From Zygnema circumcarinatum SAG 698-1b (Eukaryota; Plantae; Zygnematophyceae), in NCBI GenBank assembly GCA_037447605.1, contig CM074805.1:3009361-3073360 (forward strand): DNA of 64,000 bases, written 5' to 3'. The notes under the pieces were generated by a model. It searched no databases, was not told the origin of the DNA, and saw only the letters and a program-made list of their open reading frames with translations. Positions 18,662 to 61,000 of the stretch are shown in pieces. Both the position numbers and the translations under genes were made by a program. Each line of letters starts with the position of its first letter. Position 1 is the stretch's first letter.

Positions 18662-21600
18662 ATGGCGGAGAACACGCCGGGCATGGCGACAATGCCGCTG
18701 GGGCAGCAGACGGTTTCCATGGCGGCGGTGACGCGCGCCACAGCGCAGGCGAGCTACGCGGACCTCGTAGCGCTTGCTACCGAAGGCAGTGCAAAGGGGG
18801 ACGACATAAGCAGAAAGATGGCCCTGCTCAAGTGGCTGCACCAGGCGCGGCAGAGGCTGCTGCGACTTCTTGTAGTGGCGAAATGGGCTCGGCAGGTCTG
18901 TGCTCTTCAAGGCTCATGGGCGGTAGGAGCATGGTTTTTAGTTTTTTGTCCAGACAAACATTTACCTCAGTGGGATTAGAGCTGAAACTCGTGGTTTGAC
19001 ACATACTCGTTAAGGATGGGGAATTTAACGTGGGATGGCAGCTGGCTATGTGATGGAGTGAACTTTCTAGTTTAGTGTAGATTTTTTTGGATGCCCAGTG
19101 CTTGATTAACTCATTAATTTCCCATGCATTTTCTGCGGAAGCGAGACAATTTCGGGCGTTTTTTTTTATAGCGGAAGCATATTCAATGTAGGGTTCCTCC
19201 CATCGACATAAATTTTTGCGGAGTATCCTAGTAAACGTTGAGAATAGGATTAGAATCTAAGTTATTGCAATTAACTGGTCCGGCATATGGCATATCGGGC
19301 TGGGACCTATCCATTGAGCTCGCAAATTCCGCTATGTGCTGTTTCATGTTATTTTGATTTTTATGGGAGAGGAGCGTTTTGTTTTTGCGTGGCTTGTTGT
19401 ACAGCAACTTCCGCTTGTCGAGCGCTGTCAAATTCTTTCCGGAATTCTTTCCCACCACGATTTCTGCTTCAGTCAAGCTGCGGACTCCCTGTGGCTCCTC
19501 CACCAGGAGCTGCAGCAAGCCCGGGCACCAATCTATGATGTTCCAACAGCGGCAGAAGTTCTCACTACGGGCACCTATCAACGCCTGCCCAAGTGCATTC
19601 AGGAGTTGACTACTCCACCTTATTTGGCCGGGGAAGAGCGTTCATCCACCGTGGAAAAGCTGAACACAGTTTTACGTTCGCGGCTGCTTGATTTAGCCAT
19701 GCCTGATCAGTTGTCATCTGTAGAGGTGAAGGACGGGCGTGCTATTGTGACTGTGACAGGGGAGTACAGAGCAGAGCTGACTTTAGGATATGGAGGGACC
19801 CTCGACCATTGGTGCATACTTAAGATAGACCTGCTAGTAGGCATTGGAGGTAGAAGCACTGCTAATGCATCCAGGTTGAGTAGGAGCAAAGGAAGCGGGG
19901 AGTCGGAAGAGAATGTGGAAGGACGTGATGAGAAGCATAGGGAAGCTTTGGATATTGGAAGCCAGAGGGACCTGAGAGGGGAAGGAATGGTGGAAAAGGT
20001 TAAGCTGACTGAAGGCCAACAAAAAGCCTTGGCTGAGGACTTGCAGCGACGCATGGCAAGCAAAGGAGATCCGTTTGTGAGTCTGCATGAAGTGTTACAT
20101 GAGATTTCTATGGCGCTTGTGACGGACGCTGCATTGCGCCAGGCCAGAGTGTTACGACAAGGAAGGTGGCGAGATGCCATTAAGTTCGAGTTGCTTGGAG
20201 GGAGTGGAGAAGGTACAGACCAAGGGTTCGGGACCGGGACTGTGGTGCCACCACCTGGTTCAACACTTGCAGAAGCTGATGGCTCAGGTCGTGACAGCAA
20301 AGCTGGGGCTTCTACTGGCTTGAAGATCTCGTATTGGCTCCTCTCTCATCGAAGTGACAAAGCTAGTGCTGCTTCTGCAGTAAGTGGGCAATCGGGCTTT
20401 GTATTAGCTCCTAATAGTGAAGAGAATCTGCCAACTTTGAAGATTGAGTTGGATGCGGAGCGTAACCTGAAGTGTTCTCATTTTCCAGTGGTGATTGATC
20501 CATTCACTGGGTGCGAAGCGGAGCTGGCACTTGATCCAGGCTGCATTGATGTAGAGACGCTCTTGCTACGTGCCATCCGTTGCAATATCTACACACGTTT
20601 ATTAGATGCAGAGGTTTCGATGAAGAATGATCGTCAGCTTTCGGTTTCTGACGATGACATTGTCTTGGCACGGACCACAGCTGAATTTGTGGCGAGAGGC
20701 ACTGGAGACAATGGAGCACAGTTCACAGCGCTTGGAATGACTGGAGTCAAGTCTGACGTAGAGTGGATGGGAGATGGAGGAGAGCCATTTTGGGAAGATC
20801 AGGCAACTATCTTACAGATGAACACAAGGGCCAGTAACTATTGGGAACAAGGGTTGAACAGTAGCATTCAGACTTTAGAGCCATTCAGTTTGGAGAACTC
20901 AGAAGAGCAGGAAGCTGAGATCTGGGTCCGTGCATATGGTGGGTGCTATATGGGCCTCACCATTGATTTAAGGTGAGTTTCGCTGTTATCCAACGCTCTT
21001 CAAGGTGGTGTTGAAATCAAATGGATTTAACTTCCATCTCCAGCTATTTCTAAAGACACTTTTTGTTTGACTAGTCATGGCTTTTGATGATTGACACTTC
21101 AAATAGTTTTACTGAGGGTGATGGGTATGAGCTGCGTCTCATTCTTGTGTTTGAGAGGCTGTGTGAATGGGCATCATTGCAGTCTAATCTGTCAAGTGCA
21201 TGTTCCTAATGTAAAAACTTCAAAACATAAAACGCAAAATGGTTTTCGGTACTTTTGGAATGCATTAATAGGGCGCGTTTTGATGGATGCACCAGCCTTT
21301 TCACTGTTTCGGTCATGACTCCATTGTTTCGCAGGAATGGTAGTCAACTGATGGATTCTGCATGCATTAGTTTGTCGAACTAGATTAATCTTTTTATAGT
21401 GAAACACTGAAACCATACATACAGCATCAGATGTAAGCACAAACTAGAAATGTCACACACGTGCAGTTGTATCCTCGTAATGTTTCGACTACACAGCTTG
21501 CTAATTTCTACTTTGAGGGAATAGCATGCTTGTTCTCATAATCCCCAGCATGGAATATGAAGAGTGAAGGATTACTCTATCCGCCGACAACCAAGCCCAA

Positions 21601-38500: not shown

Positions 38501-40112
38501 GGAAATGAGCCCAGTGGAAGCATCATCCACCGCTGACCTGGCAATTCCTCTGTTTCCAACTCTCCAGGTGGTGCTTTTTCCTCATCCCGCTTGTGCAGGA
38601 GTGAAAGATGACTGTTCAGTCATGGTTGGTTTGGTCACAGGCTCTTACAAACTGACTTAGGAAAGGGTAGGATGCTCTTGCAGGCTTTACAAGAGGCCCT
38701 CCTTGTTTCTCCTCCGCAGCTTGGGAAACGCTACTTTTCCGCTCTGCAGAAGGTTGTCTTCTCCCAACTCTCCTGTTATTGGAGCTCATAGTAGCTTTCT
38801 TTTGTTGCTCAAGGCTAAAATCACACGTGAACGATTGTCCATGTCTTCCATTATCGGCTATGACAAGGCATGCCTATGAGGGCTGATAAGGCGGGGGAAA
38901 ATCTATAGGAATCTTCCTTCTGTATCTGAAGGATGCAATTGGTCAACCAATGCCAGAATGTGGTCTGGAATACTTGTCTGAAGTTACGCAAGTTCGCCTG
39001 CTGCAGGTCCTAAGAAACGCTTTACCGTCGCATGCACGGATGGACGCCCTGGAGGCTCTGATTGCCAAGTGCAACAATCCGATGCTGGTGAGAGGATCTC
39101 TTTGGTAGATGGAACTTTCATTTCGACAGTGCAAGGAGAGCGGAAGTCAGTCGACTGTAACAGTATGCTTTAAGTTGACAACTATGATTTTAGCCTCCTT
39201 GTCTATGTGCAGGTGTCTCTCCTGCTGATGTTCGCGAAAGACGAGGCACTGACGGAATGGCCAGAGCCGGGCAGCCATGAATGTGAGCTTGAAGTTCAGA
39301 AAAGTGCCTTCGCTAGTACTCGGCTGCTACACCTCATTGAGGAGACTCTTCGGCCGTCAGATGCTAGACCACCAATTCTTCCTGATGATGCAGATGCGGT
39401 GAGGGCTAAGTCTTCCGCCCCGATGGAAACTTCGGAACTGCAAAAATATCATTACTTTCTCTCCGTCATCCTCGTTTGGGTAATGAACACTCAATCTATG
39501 ATAAGCGAATATCAGCCACAGATTCAGGAGCCCAGAAAACTGGAGCCCAGACAGTTTTCACTGAACCTAATGTTGTCAGAATTAAGGTAAACCAGTGATT
39601 CAGATGGCTTTTGCTTGCTGAAAAGTAATTCGATCTGTGCAGATCCTTGGCGCGCTTAATGTATACAGATTCCTACTGCTTCGCGAGATTGCAGGTCAGT
39701 ACCCCATTAACCAACAAGCTCATATCAATGGTCAACGAAAATGTGCATGCTGATTCGACATGGCTCAGCAGCAAAGACTGACCGTGGGTAGTTCCGCTAA
39801 CTTCGTACTTCTCTTGACCCTCCAGGGGGGTCCAACCACACACAGTGCAGAACAGCCGGATGGCTCTCAAAAGTGCGCAACCAGTGGCTGCTCCCTTTGC
39901 GCCACCTGGCAGGAGCAGCTGCAGAGCAGCTCGCGGCAGGCGAGCAGCGGGAGGAGAGCGAGGCGCTTCTGATGAGCGTGCAGGCAGTGGCCAGCGTGGT
40001 GCACCGCTGTCTGCAGATAGTAGAGGCGGACATGGAGCAGAGCAGCCCCTCTGCGGTGGGGGGAATGGCAGCGCCACATTCTGCGAAGCCACAGGATGGG
40101 GAACGCAGTTGA
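35574..40112 (+). CDS. ALF4: Aberrant lateral root formation 4 / glomulin-like protein
   Basis: AGWDLLCALARPF...SGKPRELFTAFME, LSRIPRRVDHFF, and C-terminal WLLPLRHLAG...VQAVASVVHRCLQIVEADM resemble ALF4/glomulin (PRD/EM...E motif; LYRCIELVEE-like tail). The start context is gccATGG. Confidence 0.8.
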
Positions 40113-41431
40113 GTTGGGCTCCAACAGAATGGTCGCTCGTAGTGTTTGTCCAAGGACGTCACACCTTGATGTTCTTTTTGTGGGGAACGAATGCTCTTTG
40201 CTCCACATACTATTTGGCATGAACGAGGTTATGACTTGATTGGGAAAAAACCGTTACAGCTTGGATTACGTGGATGCCGGCGCTGCTGTCGCCCTGTTGA
40301 TCTCATGGGAAAGGCACGTATCTCGGAAATTTCCCAATGGGCACGGGACGATTGTCGTTTGATTGGACACATGCACTGGCACGATCTAAAGCAGCAGTGG
40401 CCTCATGCTGTCGCACTCTTAAACAAGAAGTCTATCGCACTATGGGATTTACACGGTTTTTATAAGGAACTAAGTACCAAAACCGTACCGTGGTAATTAG
40501 TTCTATCATGTTGAGGCCCACAGTGCGACGCTTCTACCAAGGTGCGACAGACGTCCCATAGTGCGACAAACAGAAAAACCAGGGTAGTAACTGCTGGCAA
40601 TCCATTACCGTACTTCGACAAGCTCCAATCGTCAATATACCTGCCACCTCTCGCCGACCTAAGGGTGCGTTTTCATGGCCCAACTTTTTTCAAATTCGTC
40701 AACTTTTGCGGACGTTGTACCGTCAGCAGCTGAAGTTCAGCCGTTGCAAAGCTTCCTTTCGGAGGTTCAAAAGCTCTCCGCCCGAGGTAGTCGCCAACTC
40801 CCGAGCTTCAACCAGCGGACCAAAGCTGCACTGCCCGCGAGCACGCGCCTAACACCCAATCCTTCCAACTTTGATGGCCGTCCAATATGAGCAGGAAACG
40901 TACGGTAGTTCCAGCCGCGAACACATCCCCCCCCTGGCGAGCGGACGCGCAGGGGCCGCGGGCGCGGCAGTCAACCGACGCGGACGAGAATGTACGGAAT
41001 GCTGGCGGGGCCGGGGAGGACCGCCATGTCGTGACGTCACGGGGGAAGGAAGGGCCGTGGCCACTCGTCCCCGGCTCCAGTTCCAAGTTCCGACGAGAAC
41101 GACGAGTTCCGTTCCTGGGGACGGACCGCGGCAACTGAAAGGGATCGGACCAACGGGCAACCATTGGTTCATGAATCATGACCCAGCCAGTCATTACCAA
41201 TGATTCGATGCCAATGGTTGCCAGCCAACCAACCAATGGCTGTGAACCATTACACGGCCAGCCATTGCTAACCAATGATTGACCAATACGTGCCGACTCA
41301 ACGTTCCGAGCTTTTCGGAACCGCCGGCAACGTCCAAAACGACAAAAGTACTGTACAACGGAACCACCCTTTTGGCGGTTGCTTGCGCCGCCCGCCCCCG
41401 CTCCGACAGTCGATCCGTCGTCAGCTGGCTT

Positions 41432-41452
41432 CACGTCACGTGACGTGACGTG
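41432..41452. promoter_or_regulatory. Cluster of four ACGT (G-box/bZIP-type) cores about 600 bp upstream of the SemiSWEET-like gene
   Basis: cacgtcacgtgacgtgacgtg is directly visible; function is inferred only. Confidence 0.35.
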
Positions 41453-41809
41453 GTTGGGTGAACGCGGCGATACCGTACAAGGCGCCGCCGGCGGCTTGTG
41501 GGGCGCGGATCGCGGGGGCGCGCTGATGACGCGTGTGGGATGTACGGCACGAGGATGGTGATGTCAGCAGAGAGGCGAGCCGCGGGCGGCCAGTCACTGA
41601 CGTGACAATGATTGCGAAGCGCCGTGATGTCAACGCCGACGCCGTGGCTGCACAGCTCATGCCATGCGGCGCATCGATGACGACAAAGAACACCGTACGG
41701 CACCGGAAGGTTGTCAAGACTTACGAGGCCGTCGGGCGAGTCGAGGCGCCCGCCGCCCGTACGTGCCGGCGGCCCGGGGTCAGCGCTCTCGAGCCAGCCA
41801 AAGTTGGGA

Positions 41810-41945
41810 GGGAGAGAGCGAGAGCGAGAGAGAAAGAGAGCGAGGAGAGAGAGAGAGAGTGAAAGAGGGAGAGAGAGAGACGAGGCAGATTGAGAGAAGT
41901 GAGAGAGAACGCACGGCGAGCGCAGAGTGAGAGAAAGAGAAAGCG
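41810..41945. repeat. GA-rich microsatellite upstream of the SemiSWEET-like gene
   Basis: (GA)n-rich run directly visible. Confidence 0.85.
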
Positions 41946-42031
41946 GGGCGAGGCGAGGCGCGCACGCGAGAGATCCCATCCGAAGTTTGAGACGAAATCG
42001 AAGAGGCGCGGGAGGATCACGGAGGGCCGCC

Positions 42032-42619
42032 ATGGCTGCCGGCCACATGTGGCACGCGATGGACACGGTCGGCCTGGCGGGGGGGGGGCTCGTCGCGCTC
42101 TCCCTCGCGCCGCAAGTGTGGAAGTCCTTCCGGACGCTCTCCACCGCCGACATCAGCTTCCACTGGTCGCGCCCCCCCCCCTCCTCCCTCTCCATCTTCA
42201 ACCCAAAATACGCGATGACATCTTTCTGAAAAGCAGCGCCCGCCTTTCTGCCGACCTAAAAACTGGCGCCCTTACCCTCTCCCCTTTGCATGCACTCGCG
42301 CAGGCTGGGCGTGTACGGCGCAGGCATCGTCATTCTGAACGTGTACGCGGCGTTCTATCAGCTGTGGGCGATCTTTGTGCCGCAGACGATAGAGCTGGTC
42401 TTCATCTTCGTCCTGGCGGGCCTGAAAGTGTACGTGGAGGTGCTGGGCGCGCGGGGAGGGGGCGGCGCCGAGAGCAAGGAGGGCGAAGAAGTGGCGGCGG
42501 GGGATGCGCTCCCCGCCTGCTGCTGCATTTGTATTGGAGCTCTTGAGGACGGAAAAGTGACGGAGTTGAAGTTGAGAGAGGGTGAACCAAAGAGTGGGTC
42601 GGGCAGTGTAGAGAGGTAG
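42032..42619 (+). CDS. SemiSWEET-like single PQ-loop (3-TM) transporter; exons 42032-42165 and 42304-42619
   Basis: Spliced protein MAAGHMWHAMDTVGLAGGGLVALSLAPQVWKSFRTLSTADISFHWLGVYGAGIVILNVYAAFYQLWAIFVPQTIELVFIFVLAGLKVYVE... has a PQ motif, a K..T..DIS motif and three hydrophobic helices. Start context gccATGG; GT-AG intron in phase 2. Confidence 0.85.
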
Positions 42620-45600
42620 TGTGTGGGGTTTATGTTTATTTGCGTAGGTTTAAAGAGGAGCGTGATCGAGAGAGGTTCAGTGAGGGCAGAAGCATGCCTG
42701 CCTGCATGTATGCATGCCTCCATGCATCATGCATGTATGCATGCATGCACGTGGCGCCATTGAGCTCCTATGAAGTTAATTAGACGGACCACAAAAGGGC
42801 CCGCCTGCCAGCGCACGATGCGCTCCCCTCCCCTCTTCGGGAACTCGTGGTTTCGGTCCCTGGAAATCTTTATCTAGTGGCTCTAATTTAGACATTTCCA
42901 TTTTTCAAACACAATTTTGTTAGGAGACTGATATTCTCACACCCTTTTTGGCTCGTTACAGACCATTTTTCGCTGGGCAGATTTTATTTTAGAAAAAAAT
43001 GAGTTAAAAACGGAAAATGCCTTTTTTCACACCTTTTTGTCTAGGTATACACCTTTTGTCGCCGGCCATATTTTATTTTAGAAAAAAAAGGGTTAAAACC
43101 CCTAAAAACCCATCTTATTTTGAGTGCGTCAATACCACCCGCACCCCCCCCCCCCCTTGTAAGCAGTTCGCGCAACGCAACAGGAGGTGGAGTTCGCTAC
43201 GCGACAAGAGGTGATCGGAGATCTGCAAGCATTGCCGAAGGGGGAAAATGGCATTGAACTGCCAAAAAAAAAAAATGAAATGAAATGACATGCGAAAAAA
43301 AAAAAAAAATGAAATGAAATGAAATGGCATTGCAAAAGGCATTAGATCTCTGGGAGAGAGTAGCCATTGCTGCGGATCATGAAAGCCATTATTGCCAGCA
43401 GCAACATGCGCAACACCGACTAAGTGTAAATTGTTAGAACTTTCCCTAGAGCTGTCCAGCAAGGCTCCGCATGAGCTCACCATTCATGCTGTTCAAGTTT
43501 TTGTTGGAAGGAGAACATTGTATAAGATGCTGGAGGAGTGCAGCCCTCACTGACCTCTCCTGACACGTTGCGCGAACTGCTTACAAGGGGGGGGGGGGGG
43601 GGGGGGGGGGGNNNNNNNNNNATCTTCAACCCAAAATACGCGATGACATCTTTCTGAAAAGCAGCGCCCGCCTTTCTGCCGACCTAAAAACTGGCGCCCT
43701 TACCCTCTCCCCTTTGCATGCACTCGCGCAGGCTGGGCGTGTACGGCGCAGGCATCGTCATTCTGAACGTGTACGCGGCGTTCTATCAGCTGTGGGCGAT
43801 CTTTGTGCCGCAGACGATAGAGCTGGTCTTCATCTTCGTCCTGGCGGGCCTGAAAGTGTACGTGGAGGTGCTGGGCGCGCGGGGAGGGGGCGGCGCCGAG
43901 AGCAAGGAGGGCGAAGAAGTGGCGGCGGGGGATGCGCTCCCCGCCTGCTGCTGCATTTGTATTGGAGCTCTTGAGGACGGAAAAGTGACGGAGTTGAAGT
44001 TGAGAGAGGGTGAACCAAAGAGTGGGTCGGGCAGTGTAGAGAGGTAGTGTGTGGGGTTTATGTTTATTTGCGTAGGTTTAAAGAGGAGCGTGATCGAGAG
44101 AGGTTCAGTGAGGGCAGAAGCATGCCTGCCTGCATGTATGCATGCCTCCATGCATCATGCATGTATGCATGCATGCACGTGGCGCCATTGAGCTCCTATG
44201 AAGTTAATTAGACGGACCACAAAAGGGCCCGCCTGCCAGCGCACGATGCGCTCCCCTCCCCTCTTCGGGAACTCGTGGTTTCGGTCCCTGGAAATCTTTA
44301 TCTAGTGGCTCTAATTTAGACATTTCCATTTTTCAAACACAATTTTGTTAGGAGACTGATATTCTCACACCCTTTTTGGCTCGTTACAGACCATTTTTCG
44401 CTGGGCAGATTTTATTTTAGAAAAAAATGAGTTAAAAACGGAAAATGCCTTTTTTCACACCTTTTTGTCTAGGTATACACCTTTTGTCGCCGGCCATATT
44501 TTATTTTAGAAAAAAAAGGGTTAAAACCCCTAAAAACCCATCTTATTTTGAGTGCGTCAATACCACCCGCACCCCCCCCCCCCCTTGTAAGCAGTTCGCG
44601 CAACGCAACAGGAGGTGGAGTTCGCTACGCGACAAGAGGTGATCGGAGATCTGCAAGCATTGCCGAAGGGGGAAAATGGCATTGAACTGCCAAAAAAAAA
44701 AAATGAAATGAAATGACATGCGAAAAAAAAAAAAAAATGAAATGAAATGAAATGGCATTGCAAAAGGCATTAGATCTCTGGGAGAGAGTAGCCATTGCTG
44801 CGGATCATGAAAGCCATTATTGCCAGCAGCAACATGCGCAACACCGACTAAGTGTAAATTGTTAGAACTTTCCCTAGAGCTGTCCAGCAAGGCTCCGCAT
44901 GAGCTCACCATTCATGCTGTTCAAGTTTTTGTTGGAAGGAGAACATTGTATAAGATGCTGGAGGAGTGCAGCCCTCACTGACCTCTCCTGACACGTTGCG
45001 CGAACTGCTTACAAGGGGGGGGGGGGGGGGGGGGGGGGGNNNNNNNNNNGGGGGGGGCAGACGCACTCAAAATAAAATGAGTTTTTAACCCATTTTTTCC
45101 TAAAATAAAATCTGCCCGGCGACAAAAGGTGTGTATCTAGACAAAAAAGGTGTGAAAATGCATTTTTCGTTTTTAGCCCCTTTTTTTCTAAAATAAAATC
45201 TGCCCAGCGAAGAAAGGTCTGTAACGAGCCAAAAAGGGTGTGAAAATATCTGTCTCCTAAAAAAATTGTGTTTAAAAAATAGAAATGTCTAAATTAGAGC
45301 CACTAGTTAAAGTTTTCCAGGGACCGAAACCACGAGTGCCCGCAGAGGGGAGGGGAGCGCATCGTGCGCTGACGGGCGGGCCCTTTTGTGGTCCGTCTAA
45401 TTGACTTCATCGGAGCTCAATGGCGCCACTTGTGCTCCTCCGCATGCATGATGCATGGAGGCATGCATGCAGGCAGGCATGCATGGAGGCATGCCTCTGC
45501 CCTCTGCCCTCACTGAACCACTCTCGATCACGCTCCTCTTTAAACCTAAGCAAATAAACATAAACCCTTAACCCTACCTCACTACGCTCCCCGACCCACT

Positions 45601-45742
45601 CTTTGGTTCACCCTCTCTCAGCCTCATTTCCGTCACTTTTCCGTTTTTAAGCCTTTTTAAAATCTGCCCGGCCGGGAAGGGAAGTTTTGATCCAAAAAAG
45701 GGGTGGAGATAACACTACCCCTCTAAAAAGCCAAAATTGCCC
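42550..45742. mobile_element. Foldback/MULE-like long inverted-repeat element
   Basis: Arm 42550-43177 (repeated at 43978-44605) is the diverged reverse complement of about 44994-45643. The inner 21-bp portion ttgtaagcagttcgcgcaacg is perfect and abuts poly-C/poly-G tracts. The right arm extends about 100 bp further, to ...aaattgccc at 45742. Confidence 0.65.
43622..45039 (+). repeat. 1428-bp-offset tandem copy of 42194-43611 (second, 5'-less SemiSWEET exon 2); probable assembly duplication
   Basis: Apparently identical sequence, bounded on both sides by 10-N gaps next to poly-G. Confidence 0.8.
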
Positions 45743-52081: not shown

Positions 52082-55000
52082 CTGGAGGAGGGTGATGAGC
52101 TTCGGATTCTGCTCCAAAAGCTCTTGCAACTTGCTTGGATCCCTCAACAGCTTCTGCAATATCCCCATTAACACGCCAGTTTCAGACAATGGAGGTACAC
52201 CGGATGTAAGCGACTTAGGAACGGAGAAGAAATACTACGAGACATGAGCAATGCCCAAGAGAAAAACGTCATGTCCAGCTTTCAAGTTCGAAAAAAAGCC
52301 TGATACTCTAGCCCGCATAAAAAAACACAAAACCCACTCAAAAAATGCATGGAAACAGGCTTTTGCAGCTCATAGCCAGTTGCCAGGAATGCAGCCAATA
52401 GGGAATAAATTGTGAAAAGGGTAGCACCTCGATAGCCTCCGGAGAAGTTCCGAAAAGAAGTTGAATCCCTGCAATGTTTTGCGGCTGCGGCTGCGCGAGC
52501 GGAGGAGTAACGGGAGGCCCTCCCGCGGGCCCGTGCATCGCCTGCGGAGGAGCACTTTGCATGGTCTGCTGCCCGGCAAACTGCTGCGGAGCAACTCCCA
52601 GGGTTGCTAGGGGCGGCCTTTGGGGCGGGCCCTGCAGGGCCGACCCCATTAGCTGCGGAGAGGAGGAGGGAGGGCGAAGCTGCTGCTGCTGCTGCTGCTG
52701 AAAGGGAGGTGCTACCTGGGGGGGGCGCATCTGCGAGGGGACCATCGCCTGAGGGGGGCTTTGCTGAGGAAGGCCGGGTTGGGAGAGCATCTGCGGGGGC
52801 ATCTGCTGGGAGAGGGCTTGAGGATGCATCTGGGGGTGCGGCATGGGCTGAGAAAGGGGCTGCTGGGGTGGCATTTGAGGGGGAACTTGAGGGGATGACA
52901 TCTGCTGGCCTGTAGCTTGAGAAGGCGGAATCTGCTGAGCTTGCCTTTGCGGGGGCACCTGTTGGGGCGGCATCTGCTTGGGAGCGACCTGCTGCGACGC
53001 TACTTGTTGCTGAAGTCCCATCTGCTGAGGAAGCATTTGTTGGGCCTGCATGTGTTGGGAATTCATCTGCGGAGGCATCTGTGTCTGCGGAAACTGCGGC
53101 TGCATTTGCTGCTGAAGGGAGGGCGGGCGGCTTGCAGGAGGCAGCCCGGGAGGCAGAGGCGGTGCCCCCGCAGGGAGAGGGGGGGGCCTTGCAGGAGGAT
53201 AGGGAGAAGCCCCCATGTGGGCCAATCCCATAGGCAGAATGCCCCCCCCCCCCGGGCGAGGGAGGCCGTACGCCTGCCCGCCCTGCATTGCAAAGGGGGG
53301 CCCTGCAGCTCTCGGTTGGCCCGCCCCTACCCCTCCTGGCAAAGGCAGGGCCATGCCTGCCGGCCACGAGGGAGAGATTTCGCTGAAAGATGGGTCCGAA
53401 CCCCCTTCTACAGGAAGGCGGGCCTGCCCCTGCATTTGCCATGGTGCGGGAGACCCGTTTGGAGGGCGAGTGTTGGGAGCAGATTGACCGGGAATCTTTG
53501 GAGGAGGAGGTGGAGGGAGGGTCTGTGGAACAAGAGGGGGGGGACTGCCAAGGATGGGATCTGGTAACCAGCCGCCAGGTCGTGGATGGGAGGGAGGGGG
53601 GGCGGGAGGAGGGAAAGGAAGGGCGCCTTGGGAAAGTTGTGCAGGCGAAGGCCAACTGCTTGAGGTTGGAGGCATTCCCCCTTCTGGGCGAGGTTGCCAT
53701 GCCGGCTGCTCAGGACCGGTGGGTCTGCTCAAAGGGGAGGAGACCCAATTTGGCCCGGGCGGCCCTCCTGACTGCTGCTGTAGCTGCTGGGGAGACTGCA
53801 TCTGATGGATGGATGGCATGGAAGGAGCAAGGAACTGCTGCTGATGCTGCTGTGGGGGTGGAGGGGGGAGTGGCGATTGCTGCTGTGAAAGAGGTTGCTG
53901 TTGCGGAGACTGGTGAGGTTGATGCTGCTGCATTTCATAGGTCGGCTGCAGCTGCTTCCCCTGACTCTGCTGCCCTTGCGATTGTGCCTCTGCCTCCGTC
54001 TGTGCACCAAAATGCTGCTGCTGCTGCTGCTGCAGACTGTGAGGGACAAATGGCTGCCCTTGCCAGGGCCCGGCAGGAGACATCCCTTGCTTTCCAGAAG
54101 GCTGCGCTAACCTTGGCGAGGAAGAGAACATTCCAGAAGGAAACTGTTCGTTGAGAGGCTCGGAAGGAGCGACATCCTTCCCTTGCGGATGTGCCTGCTC
54201 GTTTCCGGCTGGGGAGGTTCGCGATGATGTCGGAGAAGGTTCGACTCCGGGGGGGTGGAGAGTCTCTGCAGTAGCCTCACGCCCCGAGGGGGGAGCATCC
54301 ACCTCTGATCCTTTAACGTCTTGGGGAGGTCGTCTGCCATCGCCAGTTCCCATGTTTCCATTGCCTGCAGCGCCATGGAGGAGAGAGGGAGCAGCTTCAC
54401 CACTTGCTGTACTGCTGCTACGGACTAGATGAGCAGAGGGAGGCTGCGGGCTGGCCAAAGGCTGGCCAGAATTCTCCCCCCTTAATGAAGGTGGAAGCGC
54501 ACCTACAACCACAGGAGCAGGTCCCCCTGACTGCCGCTGGCGAGCCATGAACTCGTCCACGTGAATGGAGGGAGGCCTCCCACTCATCTGAGACGCGTCT
54601 CCCCCTCGTTCCCGAGCGACATAATCGTCGACATGCATGGATGCGGGTCGACTGCTGTTGGGCTTGCGAAGGCGGAAACTGTCTCTCCGAGTTGAACCTC
54701 CTGCTGCGGACCCTCCAAATGTCACCCCTGCTCCTTGGCGAGCAGCCAATGGGGCTTCAGGCAAAGCCTTGCCTCCCGCACCCCCAGGGTTTGGTTCAGC
54801 CTCAGTTCGCACCCGCTTGCTGTCATTCTCAAGAGAACTGCCACTGCGTTTTAGGGCTCCTTCAGCTCTCGCATCCTCACGAACAATCGGATGAAGAGGG
54901 GCAGTCGCACATTCCCATTCTGCTAGAGGTGACAAGCTCTGAGTCACGAGGTCGGCGTCATTACTATGAAGTCCCCTCCTCCCTGTAAGCGATGAAGTGA

Positions 55001-58000
55001 TCGCAGCAGGAAGGGGCTGCCGTCCTGGACGAGGCCGCAGGGCTGCCATCGCCCTCAGACGGTCTTCCACGGGTCGAGGAGGGGTTAAACTATCGACAAA
55101 CTCCTGAACCTTCTCAACAAGCTCTTTGGTGCTTGAAGGCGTTGCAGTCTTTAAGATATTCAGCAATGCTTGAGATGCTTGTGAAGCAGGAATCCATGTC
55201 TCTGACTGAAGGCTCAGCTTCTGCAGAGCATCGACCATCTGCAGTAGTACATGGCCTGTTTGGGCTGTCGTATCCAAAGGCCAAGCTGTGAGCCTGCAGA
55301 GTGCTTCTAGACCACAGAAGCTCTTGGTGAGCTCTAAAGCAACATGAATGGCTAATTCTGCACATCGCACCAACATTGAGTTCGTCTCTCCAACTTGGAG
55401 GCATGCTGTTAGTCTTGCCCAGAGGGCTTGTAAACTCGCCGATGGCACTTTTGTTTCAACTTTGTGATCCATGTTCTGGAAGCCCTGCTCCACTTTACTC
55501 ACTAGAGGCTCTTCTTTGTGTTCCTTGCTCTCCTCCATTCCCAATTCGATCTCTTCTCTCTTCACATGGTCTGCTGCCCGACTTTCCTGCAACTCTTCCT
55601 CGTCATCTGCCCTTCCATGTGGTGTAGCCGCGGTGTGTACGAGAGCTGCCTGGCCAGCCTTATGCTCAACCAGCCCTCCAAGTGCCTGCAAAGCAAAAAC
55701 TGTCTGCTCTCCAATTTCTACCTCCGCCAGGAAAGCGAGCAAGGCAGACGCTACAACGCAGCAGTCAGAAAACTCCGGTAATTTCTCTGATCCGGATTGA
55801 TCTTCAGATCGATTGGCCACATCCTGCATAAAACTTGACTTAGAACTGCAAAGATTTCGGATTGCCACGATGGCCCACTGCCTCTTCTCAGCATTAAGAG
55901 GCCCTTCTGCAGCCTTCGGCAAGTTCAGAAATTGCACCAGCAATGCGGGCACTCGCTCTTGTAATAGCAGCGCCTTCGGAACAGGATGTTGGGCGAGATC
56001 AGCAATCAAACGCACCACACAACCCACCCTCCCGTCCACGATACGTGATTCTCCTTTTGCTGAAACCTCTCCCTCCATTCCTGCGTCTTGCGTCTCGACA
56101 GCTCCTTCTCCGACAGAGACGACCCCCACCCCTTGCATCTCCTTATCACGTTGATTCCTGGATGGATTAAGAATAGAGACGGGCATCTCTTCCTCAATAA
56201 GCCCCTGCAGCCCCTCCAAAAGCCCTCCTACCAAGGCAGCTCCCACCTCCCCACTCCCACTCGCTGCCCGGGCCATCAGCCTCTCTGCGCTGCGACGCTG
56301 CCTCTCACAGCCGCCGGCCGCCGCACGCACAAGGAGACGCGTCAAAGGGGTTGTATGCAGCAGCAACACGCGGGTCAACCGCTCCATCTGTACGGATGAT
56401 GGCTGAGGGCGGGCAAGAGCGGTAGCGGAGATGGAGCCGACGACTTCTACTGCCGCCACTGCGGGGGAGCAGTCTCGAAGCAGCCCTTGCGGGCCAATTC
56501 TCGCGGGTGGGGGGCACTCGTCTGGGAGCATATCCGAAAGCAGAGAGAGAGCACCACAGGCTTCAGCGGGTGATAATAGGGGTAGCTGCATCTGGTCAGG
56601 AGTAACACTGGGGAGGCCGAGAAGTCGTGGAAGCAAAGGAGGGTGCAGACCATCCACGGGCCAGCAAGCAAGCACCGTTGCTAGCACCTGCCGAACAGCC
56701 AGTATTCCTACACTCCTTTCACTTGAGTTCAAATCGACCTCCGTGTAGAAGGTAGCCCTGTGGCTGAGCGCCTTCTGCAACTCCAAAAGGCCCTCCAGCA
56801 GTTTGGTATTCCTGTATGTTCCCGATGCAGCTTGCAGACGGCGCAGCAAGGTGAGCAGAAGCAACAGTGCAGGCACTAATAGATCTGACACCTGTCTTTC
56901 TGTCTGCTTCTCTGCCAGTTCCTTCTCAACACCCCCCTCCCTGACAGATAGAGTTATCAAATGCAGAGCTGTTGCAGAATGCTTGACAACTTGCTGGATG
57001 ACTCCCATGGCCCCGTTTGCATACAGCGCACCAGGCACTGCCACGTGCCAGCAGAGGGCAGCCATAGTCCTTAATGCCACAGTCAGCTGCACCGCTGCAG
57101 CATTTGCATAGGGCGAGTATCCAACCCCACTGTTACCCCCCAACCGCTCCCCCCCTGCAAACCCACCATTCCCATCTGCCGCGTCCTCTGAGGACGGCTT
57201 CTCCAAACTTTCCGCCAAACCCTCTGCCAGTCGCAGAAGCCCCCCCAAACCCTCCCGTTGGTACACAGCCATTGGCTCTGCGAGAGTCCTCACACGTGCG
57301 AGAGAGGACTCTGGGCCGGTGGCTCTCAAGCCCGCCCCCGAAGGGGCCGCCAAGGACTCTCCGACTGCCAGCTGTACGGCGGCCGCGTGTGGGGCCCACC
57401 GTGCCAGCGAGGCGGGCCAGGTGTCGGCGAGCAGGGCCTCCAGGATCTGCGCCGCGTGGTGCGCGTAAACCCACTTGGAGGCTGTGCCGCGAGCCGGCCC
57501 GGAGCCGGCTGCCTGCACCACCCGGTCTATGACGGAGGGAATTTGGGCAACTGTCACAACGGCCCATCGAGAGACGTCTTCCCTTGCTAACAGGGCCAAT
57601 TGCCAGAAGGATAGCAACCTTTCTTCGGAAGCAGGATCAGAGGAAAGGAGAGCATCGGCTCCACTAACAGCCATCATGGCATGCTTCAGGAGTGTGGCGA
57701 GTTGCTGAGGATGGCAGAGTAGGCCAACGGAATCGAATGCAGCAGCCCTCTTTAAGGACAGCGGTTGGTTGTAGGGTTCCCGTTCTCCTGACTCGCGTTT
57801 AGGTGTATGAGGACTCCCTCCAAGAGCGGCTATCATTAATTTTGTGGCCTCTATGTCCTCCGTAAATAGCAGGAGCCCGACGGGATCAGAGAGGAGGAGG
57901 AGCATAAGTGACTGCAGGCTGTATAAGAGACGATTCACCTCTGCTCGACTACGCAACCAGGGCAGGACGAGCAAAGCTGCCAAAAGGGCGACAATGCGCT

Positions 58001-61000
58001 GCTCCATAAGCATTGCCAGTACCGTCAGGTCCAAATCTTGAACAGCAGATGCTCCTCCAGACGCACAATATGAGGCTTTCACTGGCAGTATCTTCTCTCC
58101 CTCGTCATCACCATTCTCTGCCAGAGGATCTGAACAAAGCCATTGTGCAGCTGACAATGCAGGTGGCCAGTCTTCTTCTGCCATGCGAGGAGCTGACAAT
58201 AGGGACTCGAACTGAGTCATAAGCTCTGCTATCTTTTTCACAATCTGCGGACCCTTCTCTGGCATCTTGAATGGGTCAGCGAGAAGACTCTCACTTGCTG
58301 CTTGCAGTCTTGCAGATACTTCAAATGCACGGAGCCTTCGCAACAGTCTTGCCGCCCCAAAACTGACCTTCTTCTGCGAAGCAGACTGAAGAAGCAATGC
58401 CAACAAGGCCCCATATCCTGCACTCGCCCCCCCCTCCCCTCCCTCCCCCCCCCCCTCCTTCCCCGGCCACCATCCGAGCAACGCGTGGTTTGCGCAGGCA
58501 TGCGCGCTCGCAGTCTCCACCGCCAGTAGGGCGCGCTCCCGCACGTGCGAGGCGCCCCCCCAGGGCCGCCTTAGGGCAGTGGCCAGCAAGCTCATCCCTC
58601 CCGCGCGGGCAAAAAGAAAGCAGCGGCGAGCATCCCTGCAGATCACTTCTGTTGCCGCCATAGTCCCGAGGACGACTTCCAGCTGCAGGGGTGCCCTTAG
58701 CCCACCCCCGGGCCGGTTCAGCATCAGGTTTTACAGCTAGCTACATTGCCATGTACGTCATTTTTCTCTTATCTAGGTGACTGTAAGTGAATGCTAGGTT
58801 TGGTCGTGAGTGAGCGGAGGTTCATCCCACCTGGGGTAAGTTGGCATCGACACGCAACACTTCATGAAGCCACATAAGGACCATCGCAACTTCGTCGTTT
58901 TCCTGTGCTTCCTGCTCGTCAGCCGCCTGCGTGTTTGGCCCCATGTAGCCACTCTCCCTAATTCCAACTTTACGACTTTCTGTGACATTGCTCTGCGCTT
59001 GTACAGCCCGCATTCCCCCCCCTCTGGCAATGGCTGCCAGCTTTAGGGCGTGCACTTGCATGTCGCTGCAAGTCGCACCTGAAGCCCTCCAGTCTTGCGC
59101 AGCGCGTCGCAATGCTGATCTGCCTTCTTCATAAAAGCGCTCTTCCATCACTATCTCCCCTCTCCCTTCTAAACAGCGTTTAAAGCTAAGGCTAAGGAGG
59201 GGTCCCTTGACATCCAGCAAACAATCCTTCTCCTCGCGAAAAGGTTTTGGAAGGCTCTCGGGTGGTATCCCTCCAAGAGCTGCGACTCTTGAAAGAGTTT
59301 CGATGGGCCCTCGACAACTGCTGCCGAGCTCTGTCTTAAGAGTATCCTTTTCAGCTCGAGCTCCATAGATCACTATTGAAAGTATACAGTAACCCCCTCG
59401 AAAGATTATATGGTCAGTAAGTCTCCCCTGCCAAAGTTGAAGGGATGACATGAACAAAGAACAATTCGTCAATTTTGAGCGTCATGAAAACTCTTGCTTG
59501 TTTCGGATGCAAATGCCAAAATAAAGAGGACGAAAGACATGAGTACAGTGGATGCGAGCTAACCAAGCACCCTTTGTTGACTCAAATGCAATGCCCTCGT
59601 TTGTGCTATGATGGAATGTCAAAGATGGGATAGCCATAATGACATGACTTTAACAGTAAAACATGAAAAATTCCACCAATCAGTACAATAAAGTCGCACA
59701 TTTCTTCGCAGTGATTACAGTTTTCGGTGGAATGGCAGAGCGTGGAGGGCTGGTGTATCAAAATAGACTTTAATAACTCTGAAGAGCCCAAGTTTTATCA
59801 TTATTTTCGCTTTATAACTACATCTGTACTTCACGGGTACCTATTTCCTTTTTGCTGACATCCACCAATGGTTATCTTCTTTAGTCCTATCCTCATATGC
59901 CCAGTGCATTTCTTCGATTATGTACATGATGCGCCTTTTGTTTCAAAACAACTTAGGGATCTGACTACAAGGCAACACCTGTCTAGTAATCCCTAAATAT
60001 GGCGTTCTATAATTAAAATACCCAGCAATGGTAAGATGGCTTACCCCCAAATCCAATATACAGGTGCCATCCTCCACATATTCATGGGGCCCGAAGGCTT
60101 TCTCAAACCGATCCCCTGCTCGTCGCAAGTTATGTGCGAACACCTCAATAGCGAATGAAGAAGGGCCAGTTGCCCTGCATTCAACAACGCCACAGAAAAG
60201 CTGATAACCAGCCCTACCTCAATCTAACCATGGCTGCCATCTTCCTCGATTTCATTGCATTAGCCACAGCCTCTGGGCCTGAAAAATAGGTGCGGAGTTC
60301 ACACAATGAACTGTCAGTTCACACAGGAAGTTCCTTATGCTGTTCATACGCGTTTCACTGGCATGAACCTCGATACGATAGAGTAAACTGAGACTCCAGC
60401 ACACTCTTGGAGCACACTTAGTTGCACCGATTACGAGACAGCTCGTGATCAATCTTGAAAAGATGAAAGTTGAGAAACGACTGCAGTTAAGTCGTCTAAT
60501 TCTAATTACGATAGAACGGTTTCAATCAAATTCTGTTTCATTTCTACTTTGTGCTTGCAGGAACCACCCCCCATTAGACTGAGCTTTGCTAGTAACTTCC
60601 AGTCGATATAGCAGCAAGTTCCAGCTTAGCATATGTCAGCTATAGTCGTACGTGTTAAGATAACTTTCCGTATCTGCCTTAAAATTTTAGGGAAACCATA
60701 AGGAGATAATAGATGCATAGGTGTGGTTCAACAAGGCGATCATTATATCGCATACCCTTTAAATTGTACAAGTGAGGGATGAGGATTCTGCTGTCGGCCC
60801 ACAATACGAAAAGCCTGCACGTACACCGCGCAATCAAAGCGCACCTGCGATCCCTCAAAGCCCCCCTCCCCATCCTTCAAGTCTCACAAAACTGGAAAAA
60901 ATATCAAGGACGACCAGATGAGATGATTTTTTTGACACCAACGAGCTACTGTAGGTCAGGCTCGTAAGGTTTCTTGAGAACTTCAGCATGTCCTAAGGAG

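Follow-up and report, generated by a model that had tools for sequence, protein, structure and literature searches.

A transcribed nuclear gene of Zygnema circumcarinatum for a probable single-bundle PQ-loop protein of the SemiSWEET type

Eukaryotic SWEET and PQ-loop transporters are thought to derive from the fusion of two three-helix halves. The solved SemiSWEETs are all parallel homodimers, which alternate between outward-open and inward-open forms around the PQ hinge. The bacterial SemiSWEETs that we compare here (Leptospira biflexa 4QNC and 5UHS, Thermodesulfovibrio yellowstonii 4RNG, Bradyrhizobium 9KAX and E. coli 4X5M) have in common one triple-helix bundle with a membrane core of about 85 residues, a PQ motif at the hinge of the first transmembrane helix (TM1), a basic loop of the form ..K..(K/R)T.S..DIS after the PQ, and a conserved proline that starts TM3. 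Eukaryotic seven-helix (7-TM) SWEETs (MtN3_slv) and PQ-loop/LCT proteins (cystinosin, PQLC2, plant PQL) use the same bundle block and the same PQ hinge, but link two bundles through TM4 into proteins of about 230-400 residues with two PQ-loop repeats. Free halves in eukaryotes have so far been mostly unverified database models: 'SemiSWEETs' of three to four helices have been listed in eukaryotes including algae (Jia et al. 2017, PMC5742349), and ApSWEET2 and MnSWEET2 of green algae are single-bundle models that their authors flag as possibly partial (PMC9520054). In the literature we searched, no paper pairs SemiSWEET with streptophyte algae and the phrase 'eukaryotic SemiSWEETs' is almost absent. 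Here we describe a gene at 42032-42619 on the forward (+) strand of a 64,000-nucleotide stretch of Zygnema circumcarinatum SAG 698-1b (GCA_037447605.1, contig CM074805.1, positions 3,009,361 to 3,073,360), which we call the window and to which all coordinates refer. We consider it likely that this transcribed nuclear gene with two coding exons makes a single-bundle PQ-loop protein of the SemiSWEET type with a lineage-specific tail, which would most likely act as a dimeric facilitator for a small solute. Whereas the surveyed 'SemiSWEETs' (PMC5742349, PMC9520054) are database models found mainly through MtN3, the single bundle of this gene has spliced RNA contigs and the complete mRNA of a homologue behind it.

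The two coding exons, once joined, give 450 nucleotides, or 149 codons, for a protein of 149 residues. The parts of the gene are as follows (all on the + strand):

About 41800-41960: GA-rich tract, promoter or 5' untranslated region (UTR); RNA contigs break at its core, 41803-41882, and abut it on both sides
41883-42031: 5' UTR, in RNA contigs and unbroken with exon 1, without an ATG
42032-42165 (134 nucleotides): coding part of exon 1, with the start codon, TM1, the PQ motif P27-Q28 and the K..RT.ST.DIS loop
42166-42303 (138 nucleotides, GT..AG): spliceosomal intron, phase 2, within codon W45
42304-42619: coding part of exon 2, TAG stop at 42617-42619, with TM2, TM3 and a 55-residue hydrophilic tail containing CCCIC
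42620-43112: 3' UTR of about 490 nucleotides (X7 contig 42303-43112; X14 contig 44002-44540 is the same sequence in a second copy)

The open reading frame (ORF) starts with the ATG at 42032 in the context ggccgccATGG. A scan for ATG and stop codons places in-frame stops 5' of it at about 41912 and at 41924-41926, and finds no ATG between 41677 and 42032. The GC content of third codon positions (GC3) is 0.82 over the ORF and 0.91 over its membrane part, against 0.46-0.64 at the other codon positions, which is a clear coding signature. The gccATGG start, the GA tract and the upstream ACGT elements on which a preliminary description had drawn are all present in the sequence, the last as palindromes at about 41430-41455 and at 41597. 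The core of the GA tract (41803-41882) is a repeat that was skipped when contigs were placed on the window. Further upstream, at least four CCAAT boxes and an inverted ATTGG lie within about 130 nucleotides at 41150-41290, and downstream of this cluster comes a run of overlapping ACGT/CACGTG motifs at 41430-41455; both stand about 600-900 nucleotides before the ATG. A fixed CCAAT-N10-CACG module was looked for and is absent from the window.

Transcription and splicing can be read from public RNA. The stretch is present in 20 public runs of one organism, and contigs from four of these (X7, X14, X19 and X20) were aligned to 39700-45600. In all four runs the contigs are RNA-like in that the intron of the upstream gene (39695-39825) is skipped and intergenic DNA is uncovered; such contigs carry no transcription start, strand or expression level. 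In X14, a contig of 616 nucleotides connects 41883-42164 with exon 2, with at least 255 letters on its shorter side, and there is no intron-retaining branch in this run, only the spliced form. X7 shows the joint 42164->42303 (GT..AG) and, in addition, a contig that retains the intron (42137-42332). The GT-AG intron that had been proposed from the letters is removed, then, in the RNA contigs of both runs, which belong to two studies. Contigs of X14 (record 2) and X7 (record 27) begin at 41883 and are continuous into exon 1, while exon 2 runs unspliced past its stop codon to about 43112 (record 29 of X7; record 4 of X14, lying on the second copy). From 41883 to about 43112 the spliced contigs hold no further coding exon, and a tblastn search with four members of the protein family finds no second bundle elsewhere in the 64-kb window. 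What the preliminary description had named as fatal to its reading, namely extra exons that give 7 TM or a lack of expression, was looked for in these contigs, and the outcome favours the gene.

The upstream gene, also on the + strand, has its intron at 39695-39825 and its stop codon at 40110-40112, and it ends at about 40240-40272 in X19 and X20. Contigs of X7 and X14 extend from it as far as 41802, and a GT..AG intron at 40665-40893 is spliced in some of them; the PQ-loop gene is either approached here by read-through or has a long alternative 5' UTR. The loose-end sequence at 39823 is the previous exon of the upstream gene, and the loose ends at 40239 and 42026 have no match in the window. 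An X19 contig matches for about 38 nucleotides from 42026, with at least 255 unlike letters before that point, and the match of an X20 contig ends at 42190; these contigs go on into at least 172-255 letters that are absent from the window. These foreign ends at 42026 and 42190 could belong to a paralogue, to another allele or strain, or to an alternative 5' exon.

An exhaustive HMMER search over 1.84 billion representatives returns seven proteins of 88-135 residues at E<=0.001 (P0001-P0007), and a profile search widens the relatives to 14 clusters, all of them unnamed and only from Logan or ENA assemblies; with at least 15 such clusters in all, the suggestion of a little-studied lineage holds. 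A word-index search with exon 2 gave no match, and with P0001 it found only P0001 itself. This closest homologue, of 131 residues, lies on contigs of 0.9-1.5 kb from six runs of one series. In several of the runs, adapter sequence directly adjoins one and the same 5' end; the ORF has in-frame stops before it and no other sizeable ORF is present, and we conclude that the contigs are a complete mRNA from an AT-rich organism (GC 0.39). The window protein is 51.7% identical to P0001 over residues 7-95 and the alignment is ungapped at the exon junction, which independently validates the splice in the window. Most other relatives begin at the acceptor, that is, they are exon-2 ORFs called on intron-bearing genomic contigs, and all database relatives are either 86-149 residues long or intron read-throughs.

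For two of these genomic contigs, L015 and L019, the missing exon 1 could be found, 1302 and 1171 nucleotides upstream respectively, in each case across a GT..AG intron and giving proteins of 138 and 141 residues. Their intron lies within 4 nucleotides of the site in the window, in phase 0 after the next codon as opposed to phase 2 in Trp45. At the protein level the exons of L015 and L019 share 68% identity, with a ratio of nonsynonymous to synonymous change (dN/dS) of about 0.4, and the introns are without detectable similarity; this second clade is conserved under purifying selection. At least two divergent clades, with 30-34% identity between them, make up the family. The second (L015, L019; P0003, P0005, P0011-P0017) carries a C-terminal QPLMSSW after a variable acidic/basic tail, a motif that is absent from the window protein and from P0001 and that could be a sorting or interaction signal. 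In ten more contigs (L007-L014, L017, L018) no exon 1 was found by regular expression, tblastn or a local hidden Markov model, and either these contigs are too short or their exon 1 is more diverged. Pfam assigned no informative family to neighbouring ORFs on the homologous contigs.

By hydropathy, the window protein has three hydrophobic stretches (residues about 10-30, 43-66 and 67-93) followed by a hydrophilic tail. Residues 26-42 read A-P-Q-V-W-K-S-F-R-T-L-S-T-A-D-I-S and align in register with the same motif of TySemiSWEET (4rng_A): TM1 ends with Pro27-Gln28, and the loop that follows presents Lys31, Arg34, Thr35, Ser37 and Asp40-Ile41-Ser42. This bears out the PQ motif and the K..T..DIS signature (P27-Q28, K31, T35, D40-I41-S42) that were first noticed from the letters alone. 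P27-Q28, K31, R34 and D40-I41-S42 are invariant across four full-length family members, and the residues invariant in the family further include, in window numbering, Tyr59, Trp66, Phe69, Pro71, Lys86 and Glu90, all kept in the window protein. The claim of a single triple-helix bundle of the SemiSWEET type finds its support in the hydropathy, in the lack of a further coding exon in the RNA, in the upstream stop and in the 131-residue product of the P0001 mRNA. The hydrophilic tail with CCCIC, also part of the early description, is there as well, but the CCCIC run is confined to the window protein and the tail is conserved in no homologue, so that S-acylation at this site stays a guess. The distribution of charge suggests an N-terminus on the outside or lumenal face, with loop 1 and the tail cytosolic. 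The short N-terminus would leave no room for a transit peptide.

The family to which the protein belongs can be approached through profile scores, for which we take as references the gathering score of 22 bits for the Pfam PQ-loop family (PF04193) and the cut-off of 80 bits for the NCBIfam model SemiSWEET_2 (NF037968). Exon 1 of the window gene alone scores 20.3 bits on the Pfam PQ-loop profile (E=4.5e-4, profile positions 3-35 of 61), the remainder of the domain lying in exon 2, and 19.6 bits on SemiSWEET_2 (E=7.4e-4, model positions 1-30). P0001 passes the Pfam cut-off as a single repeat with 29.9 bits, and so does exon 1 alone of L015 and of L019 (22.3 and 26.0 bits); on SemiSWEET_2, P0001 is matched over model positions 1-74 of 76 (E=1e-11, 44.8 bits). 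A phmmer search of PDB sequences aligns P0001 with five bacterial SemiSWEETs (5uhs, 4qnc, 4rng, 9kax, 5uhq), collinearly over three helices and with E-values from 6.5e-6 to 1e-4; E. coli SemiSWEET follows at E=0.03, and no SWEET, cystinosin, MPC or KDEL-receptor chain is among the P0001 matches. The profile of the 7-TM SWEETs, PF03083 (MtN3_slv), matches neither window exon at E<=10 nor P0001 at E<=1, and the Pfam MPC profile matches neither the window exons nor P0001. The cystine transporter model TIGR00951 reaches 13.6 bits on P0001 (E=0.042) against a cut-off of 192.

The predicted fold points the same way. An AlphaFold2 model of P0001, built on an alignment we call A3, has helices at 2-36, 44-64 and 68-98 with a mean pLDDT of 76. 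When Foldseek compares this model with the PDB, SemiSWEETs take all of the first 15 places (TMt 0.44-0.66) and rice SWEET2b ranks below them. PQ-loop clusters of the ESM Atlas score 0.90 for window exon 1, and the best structural matches to the P0001 model in BFVD are single-bundle PQ-loop proteins of giant viruses and phages. Two attempts were discarded: a PDB search with the A3 profile lost the N-terminal columns, searched only TM2-TM3 and returned noise, and a seven-row alignment (A4) had the start of exon 2 misplaced and was not used. Judged by these comparisons, the window protein appears to be a single-bundle PQ-loop protein whose nearest characterised relatives are the bacterial SemiSWEETs, outside the curated bacterial subfamily. 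It represents a known kind of protein rather than a new one, in an unannotated family, and its pocket is non-canonical.

In the phmmer alignment to 4qnc_A, Leu58 and Gln74 of P0001 align with the sugar-binding Trp48 and Asn64 of LbSemiSWEET; the window protein has Leu56 and Gln72 in place of the Trp/Asn pair, and the second clade has Phe and Thr. Since the Trp/Asn pair is absent and the family has invariant residues of its own, the substrate may differ from a sugar. Unlike the bacterial SemiSWEETs, the window gene is a eukaryotic nuclear gene with a spliceosomal intron, and the protein family has a hydrophilic C-terminal tail of 35-55 residues, Leu or Phe and Gln or Thr for Trp and Asn, and family-specific invariant Tyr, Trp, Phe, Lys and Glu. 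The tail is presumably cytosolic, as in SWEETs, whose two PQ-loop repeats contrast with the one repeat and 131-149 residues here. As to mechanism, three helices alone could not enclose a pathway. The protein would most likely form a six-helix unit, as a homodimer or together with a paralogue, and this unit would be a rocker-switch facilitator of the SemiSWEET kind that passes a small solute. Hinge, basic loop and the proline that opens TM3 are all kept, which makes a dimeric facilitator the mechanism best supported.

We find no close relative in 185,579 prokaryotic species genomes (GTDB), nor any relative in IMG/VR or in JGI metagenomes, by pattern scans and tblastn at E<=1e-3. This argues against contamination or a recent transfer and is silent on ancient events. 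Together with the spliced RNA and with neighbours such as MED14 and retrotransposons in the same window, it upholds the earlier view of a nuclear gene rather than bacterial contamination.

Several observations weigh against reading the gene as a working dimeric facilitator of the SemiSWEET type, and they bear in part on the rival explanations as well. The cut-off of SemiSWEET_2 is not reached (44.8 of 80 bits for P0001), and the family scores of the window protein itself consist of exon 1, just below the Pfam cut-off, plus what can be transferred from a homologue of 52% identity; the Trp/Asn pair for sugar binding is absent and the hydrophilic tail is not conserved. Expression looks modest, with low depths in X19 and X20, and the RNA contigs yield neither the transcription start nor the strand; the X7 and X14 contigs continue from the upstream gene, so that some of the RNA may stem from read-through. 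Lastly, a duplicated, inverted and repeat-rich stretch contains the gene's 3' end. Some of this would fit a decaying or young non-functional gene in a rearranging region, transcribed mainly as read-through from upstream: contigs of X7 and X14 are continuous from the last exon of the upstream gene (stop 40110-40112) to 41802, and a 3' end that is tandemly duplicated, partly inverted and flanked by a transposon goes with the unconserved tail and the low X19 and X20 depths. Yet the ORF is intact with a GC3 of 0.82-0.91, every family-invariant residue is kept, the homologue with 52% identity comes from an AT-rich genome whose composition is very different, and the intron is removed precisely, in X14 with the spliced form only, so that we consider decay very improbable. 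That exons were missed and the ORF is part of a longer gene, for a 7-TM SWEET or PQ-loop protein, we find barely credible. Transcripts do reach upstream of the GA tract, and the X19 contig has at least 255 unlike letters before 42026 that might be a 5' exon, but that contig matches over only about 38 nucleotides and its loose sequence is not in the window. X14 and X7 are contiguous from 41883 into exon 1 across in-frame stops (41912, 41924), exon 2 is unspliced through its stop to 43112, no other bundle is found in the 64-kb window by tblastn, and the homologous mRNA encodes only 131 residues, in keeping with database relatives of 86-149 residues or intron read-throughs.

The two remaining alternatives leave the gene model untouched. 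One is that the protein is an obligate subunit of a heterodimer, pairing with another half-size PQ-loop protein of the same genome, as MPC1 does with MPC2, and not with itself. MPC, a relative of the SemiSWEETs, functions as a heterodimer, which is discussed in PMC12280002; MPC1 and MPC2 are likewise small half-transporters of eukaryotes, belong to the same clan and need to dimerise. The divergence of at least two clades to 30-34% identity also counts in favour of this alternative. Against this, every solved SemiSWEET is a homodimer, and we regard an obligate heterodimer as unlikely. Compared with MPC itself, the window protein has no presequence-like N-terminus, and MPC lacks the PQ..K..T.S..DIS signature. 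The other alternative concerns origin and not mechanism: the gene may have been acquired from, or exchanged with, a giant virus (Nucleocytoviricota) instead of being inherited anciently from eukaryotes or bacteria. Giant viruses and phages, too, have single-bundle PQ-loop proteins, of 83-145 residues (for example Bathycoccus sp. RCC716 virus 1 A0A7S6NY12, ChoanoV1 and Hokovirus; phage SemiSWEETs). The ESM Atlas clusters nearest to P0001 are PQ-loop proteins of 107-145 residues, mostly from Nucleocytoviricota (scores 0.90-0.91), the best BFVD match is the Bathycoccus virus protein (30% identity, E=2.6e-3), followed by ChoanoV1 and Hokovirus, and a preprint describes a giant-virus semiSWEET with eukaryotes as its closest relatives (10.1101/2025.06.17.660233). 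The identity to viral proteins is nevertheless only about 20-30%, and at about 30% no higher than that to bacterial SemiSWEETs (22-28%), and pattern scans find no relative in IMG/VR. The window gene also has cellular neighbours, a codon bias like that of the host, and an intron, so a viral source seems to us quite unlikely.

The family occurs only as unnamed ORFs or transcripts in raw assemblies, and annotation pipelines therefore seem to skip it. It also offers a testable set of eukaryotic half-transporters for dimer assembly, for substrate choice with a non-canonical pocket and for a possible exchange between algae and giant viruses. We put forward tentatively, as a possibility we would not yet favour, the larger picture of an overlooked family of nuclear, intron-bearing half-transporters, missed by standard gene prediction in eukaryotes, with a remodelled pocket and hence a non-sugar substrate, and made of homo- or heterodimers of paralogous halves. 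The family would then be a living example of the state before the fusion that gave the 7-TM SWEET and PQ-loop transporters, and was possibly traded with algal giant viruses.

Downstream, the gene's 3' end lies in an unstable, repeat-rich stretch with two further copies of gene sequence:

43622-45039, + strand: tandem copy of 42194-43611, 1418 nucleotides with 0 mismatches, bounded by poly-G and gaps of 10 N
45083-45651, - strand: truncated, inverted partial copy, 88-91% identical, of about the final 22 codons of the gene and its 3' UTR (inverted repeats I1-I4, blastn, tblastn and translation)

The tandem copy takes in exon 2 and the 3' UTR, together with the 3' portion of the intron and a hairpin element, and each of the two copies ends in poly-G and then exactly ten N (43612-43621 and 45040-45049). 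A scaffolding artefact is the simplest account of a perfect copy that lies between gaps next to homopolymers, so the copy is probably an error of assembly; the alternative is a very recent duplication. It leads read mappers to report a false intron of 1566 nucleotides. An apparent alternative 3' exon at 43731 (X14 joint 42164->43731) was rejected for this reason, as the same splice mapped to the second copy.

The hairpin element (about 470 nucleotides, at 43135-43608 and 44563-45036) resembles a miniature inverted-repeat transposable element, with terminal inverted repeats of 52 nucleotides that end in poly-C/poly-G, and the assembly gaps lie at its poly-G end. Gene and inverted copy (45083-45651) form a large palindrome around it. 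A dispersed repeat of 67-79 nucleotides occurs at 42943-43098, 44371-44526 and 45081-45247, with two 67-nucleotide copies in the 3' UTR of the gene (42943-43009 and 43032-43098). Around 45095-45159 the summed contig depth is 160-280 and many contigs continue into unlike sequence, from which we take this repeat to be high-copy and present in many transcripts.

Elsewhere in the window, a long exon with a MED14 domain lies at 19336-20973 on the + strand (Pfam E=7e-34), and further long ORFs, as far as 28566, could be parts of that gene. On the - strand, an uninterrupted ORF of 2128 codons without a Pfam family spans 52341-58724; the N-terminal two-thirds of its product look like an ordinary, probably helical-repeat protein, and Gln and Pro are very abundant in the final 600 or so residues.

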